Of a stretch of 64,000 nucleotides of DNA, positions 12,097-16,339 are shown in pieces. A model generated the notes under the pieces. It saw only the letters and a list, made by a program, of their open reading frames with translations. It was not told the DNA's origin and did no database searches. How positions within the stretch are numbered: position 1 is the first letter of the stretch; each line of letters opens with the position of its first letter. The position numbers were made by a program, and so were the translations under genes. Source of the DNA: Adineta vaga (taxonomy: Eukaryota; Animalia; Rotifera); contig CP075494.1 of NCBI GenBank assembly GCA_021613535.1, forward strand, positions 11,904,001 to 11,968,000, given 5' to 3'.

Positions 12097-13341
12097 ATGC
12101 AGAACGAATCTGAAATTTTCTTACCATCAACAAAGAATCATCAAAAAAACCGTCGACGTCATGAGAATGTATCAAAATTAGCATCGTTTTTATTTAGATT
12201 ATTTGAAGAATTACCATTCTATCCGTTTATTCTGTTTTTTATCTTTACATTTGCTCTATATGTCGGTTTACTGACAACGTATGAAGAACATTATGAAGCA
12301 AGTGTACCAATATTATTTTACATCGAATTAAGTATCTTTATCTATTGTTTAATTGAATTCATTCTTCGAATTTATGCATCCAATGCTAGAGAACGTTATC
12401 GTGGTGTGCAAGGCAAATGTCGATTTTTCTATGAGCATTACTTGATCATTGATTGCTTTCTATTATTTTCATATGGAATTCTTTTTCTATGGAATTGGAT
12501 GAAATTCTATCACTCACATGCATTGTTTATACATGGACTACGTTTTCTTCAATTATTACGTTTTATTCCACTGGATCGGCATCTTAAATCGATTCCCTTG
12601 ATATGTAAGATCATTGGTCAATACCGACGAGTTCTATTAGCAACTGTTTACTTATGTTTCTTACTCATGTTACCAACTGCTTATCTTCTATGGATAGTCG
12701 AACGATTTGTTAAATCAGATGATCAGTATTTTTTTAGAACATATACGGATTCATTATGGTTTACTGTCAATTCAATGGCTACGGTAGATATAAGTTTCAA
12801 GGCAATCCTCATTTGTTTCTTTTCTTCTTCTTCTTCTTTGTTTTTTCTATAGATTGGTTATGGTGATACTTGGCCTAAAACTTTGATTGGTAATTCCGAA
12901 TTTGATTTATTCGTTTAGCTTTAGTTGTGTTATCTAGGTCGAATATTGACTGCAAGCTTATGTTGCATTGGAGTTGTTCTTTGGACACTTCCAGCTGGAA
13001 TAATATCTGCAGGTTTAACATCCATTGATGAAAATCGTCGTGAACGTGAACGTCTTCGTCTACCAGCTGCAAGATTTATACTGGCTTGGTGGCGTTTACA
13101 ACATTTCAATAAATTTCGATCAATACGTAACAAAGATAATCAAAAAGAAAGATGTAAACAAGTTATTGCGTCTCTTCTTTGTGCTCGATTTTATCGAGAA
13201 TTTCGGCAATGTCGATATGGTATTAATAACGAATGTGATATTCAAATTAGAAGAGAAATTAAAAAAATACTTCATCATCTGGAATTAATTGAAAACAAAT
13301 TAAATGATGCCAATCAAAATCATCTTCCTGTCGAATTATAA
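12097..13341 (+). CDS. KCNQ: Compact, divergent KCNQ-like (Kv7) 6-TM potassium channel
   Basis: S4-like GLRFLQLLRFIPLDR; pore TIGYGD across an intron starting at 12784; S6 LPAGIISAG; helix-A-like PAARFILAWWR; C-terminal coiled coil. Confidence 0.82.
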
Positions 13342-13713: not shown

Positions 13714-13725
13714 CAAGATGGCTGC
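13714..13725 (+). promoter_or_regulatory. YY1-like promoter motif upstream of the Mic60-like gene
   Basis: CAAGATGGCTGC, 11/12 match to the YY1 consensus CAAGATGGCGGC, ~130 bp before the ATG. Confidence 0.45.
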
Positions 13726-13856: not shown

Positions 13857-14971
13857 ATGTTACGCGCCATTAATTTATCGCGTGCTCAGCCAGCAGCACG
13901 AAATTTAATCCATGTTACTAAGCGATTTCAACAAAATTCTAGCTCATCAGGTTCAGCTACAACAGCTTCAACTAAATCAACACCTGGTTCAACTTCAACT
14001 CAAGCTAAAACCAACGATCCACCATCAGCTAGTAAAACACAAACAGCATCCACAAATCCATCGTCAAATGCACCCATTGATCGAACCAATAATCCTCAAA
14101 AAACAACAACTTCACCTCCACCAACATCACGACCGGTAACATCATCCTCATCCTCATCGTCATCATCCTCATATTCAGCCGGGGCTAGCACTGGTGGCAG
14201 CGGTGGAACAGTTAAGGCTGTTGCTTATGGTCTTGCACTCGGTCTCGGTGTAACACTCTTATATGCTGAATACGATAATGGATCATTTCGTCGTAAAGTC
14301 GAATCAACAATTCCATTGAGTCCAACAATTTTAGGTGGTCTTGATAAAATCATCGATCCTGTTTTTGGTCGTCATAAGAAATTAACAACTATTATATCAG
14401 AAAAAATGCCTGATGTATCAGGTGTAACAAGTCGTTTACCTGATAAAGAACAACTTCGCAAGGCAGGTGAACAAGTTAAGGATGCTGCCAATACTGTCTA
14501 CAGTAAATTACCAGATCAAAAACAAATTCAAAAAGCTGGTGAACAAGCTAAAGATGCTATAAATGATGCTTATGATAAATTACCTGAATACAAAAAAGTC
14601 AAAGGTGCGGTTACTCATGCTGCTGATCAGGTAATTTTTACATTTGATTTTCTATGGAAAATATTAAATTTTGTTTGATAGGTCAAAGATGCTGTTCATA
14701 CCGTTCGAGATGCTTTACCTGATCCAAAACAAGTGAAAAAAACATTCACACATGCTAAAGAACAAGTTGAAGATGCTGCTAAATCTGTTCGAGATACAGT
14801 TAAAGATGCTTTACCAGCAACCAAAGGTGTATCTGGTGAACAATCACGACGAGGTAATGATCCAGTCTTTTTGGAAGAACCTGGTGAAGTTGCTACTCCA
14901 CCACCACGTAAATGGTAAGCAATTAATCACTATTAATATCAATTTTTCTAACTATTTATTTCAGGAAATAA
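13857..14971 (+). CDS. Mitochondrial inner-membrane protein: Mic60/mitofilin-like N-terminus followed by LEA-like amphipathic repeats (~337 aa)
   Basis: Presequence MLRAINLSRAQPAA; TM plus GVTLLYAEYDNGSFRRKVESTIP; intron 14631-14681; four LP(D/E)-initiated K/E/D/A/Q-rich repeats. Stop at 14916-14918, or at 14969-14971 if intron 14915-14964 is spliced. Confidence 0.75.
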
Positions 14972-15415
14972 TATATAAATATATATGAATAATCAATCGT
15001 GCTATTTAATTATTATTCTATCAAAACGACAAGGATTATACTAGAATTTCATCATCTATTAGAAACTAAAATCAAGTGTGAATTCTGTTCAAAGTAAAAT
15101 TAAAGTTTAAAAATGAATTGAACTATTCATGATTTTGTTTTTTTGGTAGAATTCAATCTCTTTTCAAGACATTTGATGTTTTCGTGAAAAGATTCCTTTG
15201 GTTTGGAATAAATGATTACATTCTGTATAATCATCATCGTTTCTAAAAGACAATTAGCACGATTTGATTCTTTTTTTTTCTTTAATCAAGCACTTTTAGT
15301 ATTATTATTGTTCTTTTTACAAAAAACAAATATAGATTCAAAACATGTAGTCCTGATCTATGTATTCAATAACTCTATGTTGTGTGATATTATTTTCAGA
15401 TAGTTAAAAATTCTT

Positions 15416-16339
15416 ATGGCACAACAAGTAGGTCGATCAGCAGTCGCTGCATCTCGTTTTACATCGAGTAAAGTTGATTGGAATCGTCTATTAAAATTGA
15501 GTGGTTCTAATACAACAACAGTTTCCAATCTTCAAGGTAAATGGAGTCAATCAGCAGCGAAGTAAGTCAAGAAGTTAAGAATCCTATTTTAATTGTATTT
15601 GTTATTATTAGAATGAACGCTTTATCAGATTCCTTACCGAAAATTGATTTTTCTTATTATCGAAAAATGGTTGCAGATCCAACATTAGTTGATAAACTTC
15701 AAAAAGAAGTAAGATAAATATTTTGTTCTTTCATTTTGTAACACTATATTTTGAAGTATGAAAATGCCCAAATTGCGTATCCAAAAGATAGCGCTAATCG
15801 TGTTCAAGAACTTGAAGAATATGCTAAGACAGAGGTAATAAAGAATTCAAATCGATGATTGATTTAAATTAATGATTTTGTGCATAGGAAAAACGTGCAC
15901 AAGAGTTTATTAAAGTTGCCGAAAGTGAAGTAGAAAAATTACGAACAGAATTTGATCGATGGGATAATGTACCTCCAGCTGATGAAGTTACATATGAATT
16001 AGGTATGTTAAAATTTAATGATCTAATTTCGAAATCAAACATCTTATCTTCACTTTAGCTTCTTTCTACATGCCAGAAGCTGTCTATCCACGTGTATGGG
16101 ATAAAGATGAACATGATAAATTGAAAGATGTTCAATTTTTACCATATGAAAAACGAGATTCATTACGTTGGTGGGTAGAACAAGGCGGAGAATTACTTCC
16201 ACATAAACATGAATGGGTTATGCCAGATGAAGCACTCGATCCAATTGGTGCTCCACCTCGACCACAAAAAGCACTTTCGGATACTCACGGACATGGTCAT
16301 GGTGATACAAAGAAGATCAGTGCTGGAAGCAAACATTAA
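15416..16339 (+). CDS. ATP5PD: Mitochondrial ATP synthase subunit d (5 exons, ~238 aa)
   Basis: SKVDWNRL, LPKIDFSYYRKMV, LVDKLQKEY, IAYPKD and VPPADEVT. Exons 15416-15561, 15612-15708, 15757-15834, 15888-16002 and 16059-16339 stay in frame. Confidence 0.88.

Follow-up and report, generated by a model that had tools for sequence, protein, structure and literature searches.

Bdelloid rotifers carry, beside an intact Mic60, a conserved Mic60 without a mitofilin domain, and this short form, described here mainly from Adineta vaga, appears to be new; a literature search found no publication on bdelloid mitofilin or on a short Mic60. The gene was found in a 64,000 nt stretch of A. vaga DNA (referred to as the window), which is located on contig C5 of a genome searched as 100.8 Mb in six contigs. 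It encodes a protein of 337 aa in three coding exons (13857–14630, 14682–14914, and 14965–14971). For the database searches, the gene was entered exon by exon; the exons were joined for the determination of length, alignment, and dN/dS. The following features, numbered by window position, were distinguished:

13857–14630, + strand: coding exon 1 (aa 1–258), comprising presequence, Ser/Thr/Pro spacer, transmembrane (TM) helix, post-TM block, repeats 1 and 2, and most of repeat 3 (55% identity to exon 1 of the Mic60 gene on homoeologous chromosome 2, C2; RNA contigs)
13857–13934, + strand: likely mitochondrial presequence, aa 1–26, net charge +5, first acidic residue at 54 (deduced from the sequence; kept across short forms, dN 0.17, dS 0.54)
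13935–14207, + strand: low-complexity Ser/Thr/Pro spacer, aa 27–117, of species-dependent length and presumably on the matrix side (coil in the model)
14211–14267, + strand: single TM helix, aa 119–137 (Kyte–Doolittle 19-residue maximum 1.6)
14268–14405, + strand: Mic60 post-TM block, aa 138–183 (Pfam, alignment)
14436–14810, + strand: four proline-punctuated amphipathic helical units, aa 194–301 (24, 24, 28, and 32 aa), split by intron 1 (common to full-length bdelloid Mic60)
14631–14681, + strand: intron 1, 51 nt, phase 0 (RNA contigs; same position in the C2 copy)
14682–14914, + strand: coding exon 2, aa 259–336, repeat 4 and tail (alignment)
14853–14906, + strand: conserved acidic, proline-rich tail motif, aa 316–333 (alignment)
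14915–14964, + strand: intron 2, 50 nt, phase 2; its donor is that of Mic60, with a counterpart in the C2 copy, and is joined to the former upstream acceptor of NDUFB2 (RNA contigs, alignment)
14965–15093, + strand: exon 3, with the last codons, the stop codon (14969–14971), and 3′ UTR from the NDUFB2 5′ leader and first codons (z 3.5–4.4 against NDUFB2 exon 1)
15094–15149, + strand: intron within the 3′ UTR, 56 nt, 122 nt past the stop, likely a relic of the NDUFB2 coding intron (RNA contigs; donor context like that of the NDUFB2 coding intron)
15150–15369, + strand: final exon of the 3′ UTR, resembling exon 2 and 3′ UTR of NDUFB2 (z 3.1–4.0; up to z 12 in relatives)
15416–16339, + strand: ATP synthase subunit d-like gene, collinear with the C2 copy (alignment, RNA contigs)

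The gene is authentic and transcribed. Both coding introns and the 3′ UTR intron are skipped in RNA-like contigs from three runs of three studies, and these contigs end at 15278–15369, 5′ of the ATP synthase d-like gene. The DNA run revealed no splice joints, and one of its contigs is unbroken across 14423–16132. The spliced RNA contigs and the unbroken DNA contig together indicate that the gene is real, transcribed, and genuinely short. All three coding differences in an RNA contig from another isolate are synonymous. The first-pass annotation, made from the window alone, had let the gene stop at about 337 aa without coiled coil or mitofilin domain and the next one begin some 450 bp later; this agrees with RNA contigs stopping in the 3′ UTR and with the ATG of the ATP synthase d-like gene at 15416, 445 nt past the stop. 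In public gene models (L018 6001–9680 and P0114), the short gene is fused to ATP synthase d or to an ion channel, and due to these mergers it is hidden in annotations.

Several observations concern the flanks and untranslated parts of the gene. Directly upstream lies a KCNQ-like ion channel gene (12097–13341; Ion_trans, E 6.6e-10), which has no counterpart within 30 kb around the C2 copy and is found beside the long Mic60 in locus L021. A 9-nt motif about 140 nt 5′ of the start codon (13714–13722), which we take to resemble a YY1-type initiator element, also occurs upstream of the C2 copy and of the short gene of Rotaria sordida. According to the exon-junction rule of mammals, an intron 122 nt past the stop would trigger nonsense-mediated decay; the mRNA of the short gene is apparently stable despite its spliced 3′ UTR intron. 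Blocks of the 3′ UTR that represent NDUFB2 relics are well conserved across species (window 14990–15010 and 15245–15325; loci L010, L017, L019, L020, and L030–L034). Their folding is no better than that of shuffled sequences, and they may represent protein-binding or processing elements. A 63-codon frame at 15212–15403 was rejected as a gene, having no Pfam match and being broken between species, and was read as UTR.

By descent the short form is a Mic60, as indicated by its homologous presequence, TM helix, and post-TM block, by common introns, and by synteny. The Pfam Mitofilin profile (PF09731) matched the window exons over profile positions 14–135 with E 3.8e-4 and 20 bits, below the cut-off of 27.4, and in the whole genome it matched two places only, namely C2 (profile 152–612, E 4e-59) and the window (N-terminal part, E 6.5e-4). 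Exon 1 shares 55% identity over 258 aa with exon 1 of the C2 gene, and exon 2 shares 66%. The earlier assignment of the N-terminal half to Mic60 is supported by these values, and the close resemblance to human Mic60 that it invoked holds only loosely: within the post-TM block, 9 of 21 residues are identical to those of an amphibian Mic60. A separate full-length Mic60, which had been suggested as a check, was found on homoeologous chromosome 2 (P0049, 825 aa). It has presequence, membrane anchor, repeats, acidic-proline tail motif, and the positions and phases of both introns in common with the short form, and its third exon adds 487 aa comprising helical bundle, coiled coil, and mitofilin domain. 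No exon for any of these three parts is present in the 64-kb window, and the genome contains one copy each of the third Mic60 exon and of NDUFB2. Since C2 and C5 have their flanking genes in collinear order and the short gene is under purifying selection (see below), it is to be regarded as a retained ohnologue.

Structure prediction for the long protein was unconfident through exon 2 and became confident from the start of exon 3; this border corresponds to the place where, in human Mic60, the disordered linker gives way to the helical bundle (PMC13615979). The short form consists of presequence, spacer, TM helix, and linker; the cut lies exactly where the linker ends and the first folded domain begins, and leaves the protein without the animal helical bundle, the coiled coil, and the mitofilin domain with its lipid-binding sites. 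The first-pass annotation had placed the repeats where the coiled coil should be; they are instead found at the same place in full-length Mic60, before bundle and coiled coil. Its view of a neofunctionalised Mic60 paralogue with a LEA-like domain thus stands as far as a paralogue without the C-terminal half is concerned and fails with respect to an origin by swapping in repeats: the short form arose by truncation from a bdelloid Mic60 in which the repeats were already present, and it is no new fusion. A fusion of Mic60 with a LEA gene was also considered and rejected, no donor having been found and the repeat profile matching only the two Mic60 loci of the genome. The other option raised earlier was one half of a split Mic60 whose mitofilin half lies elsewhere, an arrangement that has been proposed for euglenozoans (bioRxiv 10.1101/2025.01.31.635831). 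Together with an assembly or annotation artefact, it is refuted and retains practically no probability: the genome has a single mitofilin exon, which is part of the full-length gene, DNA and RNA contigs behave as described above, and the same structure recurs in many species.

An origin by loss of exon 3 and capture of an NDUFB2 acceptor after genome doubling is well supported, and we hold it with high confidence. The gene order Mic60–NDUFB2–ATP synthase d was found in Didymodactylos carnosus, R. sordida, A. steineri, on A. vaga C2, and in one further bdelloid, and NDUFB2 is missing as a gene at the short loci. Past the last acceptor, the R. sordida short locus resembles the start of NDUFB2 (74% over 98 nt, E 1e-9; E 1e-8 in another species), and a later block at short loci matches NDUFB2 exon 2 and 3′ UTR. 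Scored on exonic sequence only against 300 dinucleotide shuffles, the relics of A. vaga reached z 3.5–4.4 for exon 1 and z 3.1–4.0 for exon 2 and UTR, and those of relatives up to z 8 and z 12, respectively. Locus L030 still contains the old NDUFB2 start codon and five NDUFB2-like codons followed by a stop, and in A. vaga the 3′ UTR intron and the NDUFB2 coding intron can be aligned at their donors. Among 25 metagenome loci examined, all ten short-type loci reaching the next gene are without exon 3 and without an intact NDUFB2; exon 3 is present at nine long-type loci. These results suggest that the ancient bdelloid genome doubling would have produced two copies of the Mic60–NDUFB2–ATP synthase d cluster, one of which presumably lost the large third Mic60 exon while its NDUFB2 decayed. 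The donor of Mic60 intron 2 would then have been joined to the old NDUFB2 acceptor, with a stop reached within two codons in the former NDUFB2 leader; the remains of NDUFB2 would serve as the 3′ UTR of the resulting mini-Mic60, which selection would subsequently have retained.

The three genes form a tight, same-strand cluster of inner-membrane genes across bdelloids (L001, i.e., C2, as well as L014, L016, L021, and L022; window 13857–16339). On A. vaga C2, NDUFB2 starts only about 200 nt past the Mic60 stop, and a splice acceptor lies just 5′ of the start codon of NDUFB2 as well as of that of ATP synthase d. The cluster is possibly an operon resolved by spliced-leader trans-splicing.

Short forms were detected in R. 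sordida (286 aa, same neighbours), in the Rotaria isolates Silwood-1 and Silwood-2, in D. carnosus (347 aa), and at no fewer than ten metagenome loci. In the phylogenetic tree, the sequences from Adineta and Rotaria are divided into a short-form clade and a long-form clade, reciprocal to each other (support 99/97 and 97/92), so the truncation is older than the split between these genera. The D. carnosus copies are long branches, which grouped together for the full region, with a single short clade unrejected (p-AU 0.08), and stood apart with poor support (43/91) on non-repeat columns. Since the D. carnosus short gene is a prediction, the shared neighbours are absent on its contig, the resemblance of its last exon to NDUFB2 is not significant (z 1.7), and the tree gives it no stable position, it may represent an independent truncation.

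The short form is under purifying selection, with dN/dS about 0.2–0.3. The mean for the short clade was 0.17 (ratio of means) and unsaturated pairs gave 0.2–0.45, these being values from a simple counting method applied to AT-rich, partly saturated sequences. Between the short forms of A. vaga and R. sordida, pN was 0.116 and pS 0.399 from the TM helix to the end (P 1e-12), and the repeats alone were also found to be under purifying selection (P 1e-5). Similarity within the short pair exceeds that within the long pair (80% vs. 73%). The TM helix and post-TM block represent the best-conserved part of the short form, with 84–88% amino acid identity between species; dN for this part was 0.07 in the short clade compared to 0.19 in the long one, and identity in the matched pair was 84% compared to 72%. 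Purifying selection and the intact reading frame rule out a pseudogene, and the short gene very probably encodes a functional protein. The possibility that it is an expressed vestige, i.e., a decaying duplicate whose sole remaining use is a transcription unit that serves the ATP synthase d gene downstream, would be in line with RNA contigs reaching close to the next gene and with a 3′ UTR intron that could trigger decay of the mRNA. It is largely refuted by the dN/dS values and is considered very improbable, as the reading frame has also stayed intact in R. sordida, where codon 20 of the adjoining ATP synthase d duplicate is an in-frame stop (L010 9626–9685), and at loci where this duplicate is gone (L017 and L040–L043).

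The repeats that the short form inherited are a feature of bdelloid Mic60. The units of 24, 24, 28, and 32 aa each open with a Leu-Pro pair, and their hydrophobic moments of 0.34–0.43 at about 100 degrees exceed those of shuffled sequences (P 0.014 to 0.0005). The mean moment is 0.31 in the short form and 0.28–0.34 in bdelloid linkers, as compared to 0.20 (maximum 0.32) in 74 non-bdelloid Mic60 linkers. A profile built from the long-form repeats gave strong scores for all bdelloid forms, whereas no retrieved non-bdelloid animal Mic60 matched it (best E 0.009), in a sample that held no named monogonont sequence; the non-bdelloid protein of highest identity over the C-terminal half (P0127) is also without repeats. 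The number of units varies between species from three to five and can fall to almost none. In a short-type homologue of 177 aa from a JGI contig (P0047), nearly all repeats are gone while TM helix, post-TM block, and tail motif are intact, which may be a real variant or a misassembly. The long-type first exon of P0121 (245 aa) has repeats broken by many prolines. AlphaFold predicted a separate helix for each unit, and the fold becomes confident only with the beginning of exon 3; pLDDT over the repeats was 25–60 in both models, and owing to this low confidence the predicted helicity rests on the sequence pattern.

The earlier view of the units as resembling LEA or apolipoprotein class A helices proved real at the level of pattern: besides being amphipathic beyond shuffles, each unit contains one match of 7–8 out of 9 positions to the group 3 LEA 11-mer consensus (four windows, shuffle P 0.0005; consensus from PMC4326354), and the GRAVY value is −0.96. 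Self-similarity peaked at 24 and 28 and not at 11 or 22, and three adjacent motifs, as expected for contiguous tandem 11-mers, were not above shuffles (P 0.07). The Pfam comparison of LEA_4 with Mitofilin that had been proposed returned the weak Mitofilin match for the N-terminal half and no LEA family for the window exons up to E 1; no LEA family was among the 25 commonest Pfam families of 17 homologues either. The LEA_4 profile (PF02987) itself matched nowhere in the A. vaga genome, hence no weight is put on this genome search. Only helical families appeared below threshold, namely YtxH, ApoLp-III, apolipoprotein, and Hsp12. ApoLp-III matched weakly in 12 out of the 17 homologues (best E 1.4e-4), and no apolipoprotein or apolipophorin profile exceeded its cut-off (best 18.6 bits vs. 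36.3). The sub-threshold matches to ApoLp-III, apolipoprotein, and Hsp12 are best read as reflecting composition and not ancestry. When the short-form model was compared with folds in the PDB, no match was obtained, the model being too poor, and the PDB sequence search returned generic helical proteins only. In the ESM Atlas, there was no match at 0.9 or above, and clusters of the Hsp12, Grg1, and KIN2-like types at 0.80 are leads only. On paper, the repeats behave like class A amphipathic helices; they do not belong to a LEA family.

Mic60 has one N-terminal TM anchor and exposes its remainder to the intermembrane space (PMC13615979), and in human Mic60 the TM segment, the coiled coil, and the mitofilin domain are each required for MICOS assembly (bioRxiv 10.64898/2026.03.19.713006). 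By analogy, mini-Mic60 would be imported by means of its presequence and arrested in the inner membrane by its single TM helix, a location that is suggested by these two elements. It would then present three to four class A amphipathic helices in the intermembrane space, where they could lie on the lipid surface. It would presumably be unable to tetramerise, to bind Mic19 or SAM, or to bend the membrane via the lipid-binding sites of the mitofilin domain. We consider it moderately probable that the protein is a lipid-coating accessory of the inner membrane, which would act in or beside MICOS through the conserved TM helix and post-TM block and add membrane-coating helices without junction-forming activity; it would thereby partition a function that full-length Mic60 already has. 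The tethering of a protective domain at crista junctions, as proposed in the first-pass annotation, is doubtful, given that the short form has lost the parts that MICOS assembly is known to require.

Alternatively, the short form could modulate MICOS as a natural dominant negative whose TM helix and post-TM block occupy Mic60 sites and which dampens crista junctions or spaces them, with the repeats as mere passengers. The stronger conservation of exactly this region in the short clade and a repeat number that can drop to almost none would fit such a role. We regard it as improbable, since the repeats are also under purifying selection in the short clade and the known oligomerisation surfaces (bundle, coiled coil, and mitofilin domain; PMC13615979) are all missing, which leaves mini-Mic60 without a known route into the Mic60 tetramer.

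The accessory role also has to be weighed against that of a dedicated desiccation protectant, i.e., an LEA-like shield anchored in the inner membrane, which would fold on drying and stop membrane leakage or fusion. The LEA-type motif in each unit, the hydrophilic composition, and the restriction of the repeats to bdelloids among the Mic60s retrieved are compatible with this function. Moreover, all named carriers of the short form are desiccating species (tolerance according to PMC7943196). Desiccation tolerance is ancestral in bdelloids and was lost in some Rotaria (PMC10080820), and in the non-desiccating lineage of R. magnacalcarata and R. socialis the N-terminal half of the long Mic60 has accumulated 42 private changes compared to 14 in R. 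sordida (P 2e-4). The excess is concentrated in the acidic-proline tail motif (13 vs. 0), whereas coiled coil and mitofilin domain evolved at an even rate (17 vs. 13). The proline run of this motif, before the helical bundle, is lost only in the proteins of these two species (P0060 and P0293).

The rate contrast, however, represents a single lineage, and the long Mic60 of both non-desiccating species (P0060, P0293) keeps the amphipathic repeats. The first-pass annotation had itself named the presence of these repeats in ordinary Mic60 of non-anhydrobiotic relatives as an observation that would count against its proposal, and they are present in the full-length Mic60 of R. magnacalcarata and R. 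socialis, although tolerance was lost secondarily in these species (PMC10080820). The short form was not retrieved for either of them, but the same retrieval also missed it in the desiccating A. ricciae and A. steineri, and even A. vaga's own. Further points against a protectant are the missing LEA family match, the period of 24–32 without contiguous 11-mers, and the homologue P0047 without nearly all repeats. In the accessible parts of the supplements of two A. vaga expression studies, including the desiccation study, no Mic60 term occurs. A dedicated protectant is regarded as rather unlikely. A broader scenario is equally tentative: the bdelloid Mic60 linker could have become a set of LEA-like helices and could then have been freed, by exon loss and acceptor capture, as an anchored protein that protects or remodels cristae in drying and that was lost or relaxed in non-desiccating Rotaria. 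As judged from sequence data, a role of the short form in drying survival is plausible.

Apart from the anchor, all domains needed for Mic60 function are missing, yet different bdelloid genera have retained the gene. It thereby offers a natural test of the Mic60 anchor and linker alone, a region usually seen as a passive disordered spacer. It also provides a concrete candidate for mitochondrial survival of drying, with a built-in contrast between desiccating and secondarily non-desiccating Rotaria, and a traceable case of a new gene end built from a dying neighbour after whole-genome doubling. With the evidence at hand, it would count as a well-documented curiosity and not as a new system.

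Compared to the full-length Mic60 of A. vaga (P0049), the short form shows the same N-terminal architecture up to the tail motif but is without the whole 487-aa exon, including the lipid-binding sites, and ends on a captured NDUFB2 exon. The bdelloid repeats occupy the same place as the linker of other animal Mic60s, between TM helix and helical bundle, which in human Mic60 (aa 62–197) is intrinsically disordered (PMC13615979). In the other animals retrieved, this linker is Pro/Lys/Glu-rich and of low helical moment, whereas in bdelloids it is composed of three to five proline-punctuated amphipathic units. Similarity to group 3 LEA proteins (bdelloid ArLEA1A/B, tardigrade RvLEAM together with MAHS, and pea LEAM) exists in the hydrophilic, A/K/D/E/Q-rich amphipathic helices, the 11-mer geometry, and mitochondrial targeting. 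Mitochondrial LEA proteins, however, are soluble and feature contiguous 11-mers, RvLEAM being predicted to reside in the matrix (PMC4326354), while the short form is membrane-anchored, has one motif per 24–32 aa, and matches no LEA family in Pfam. Exchangeable apolipoproteins, apolipophorin III, and Hsp12 likewise possess proline-punctuated class A amphipathic helices, but all scores were far under the family cut-offs and mixed with those of unrelated helical families. The trypanosome protein Mic24 (formerly ‘Mic60’, associated with the soluble Mic34 and Mic40) is similarly membrane-anchored, with a Mic60-like outline and no mitofilin domain. In contrast to Mic24, which has no homology to Mic60 and occurs in organisms without a canonical Mic60 (bioRxiv 10.1101/2025.01.31.635831), the rotifer protein is a Mic60 descendant residing beside an intact Mic60.
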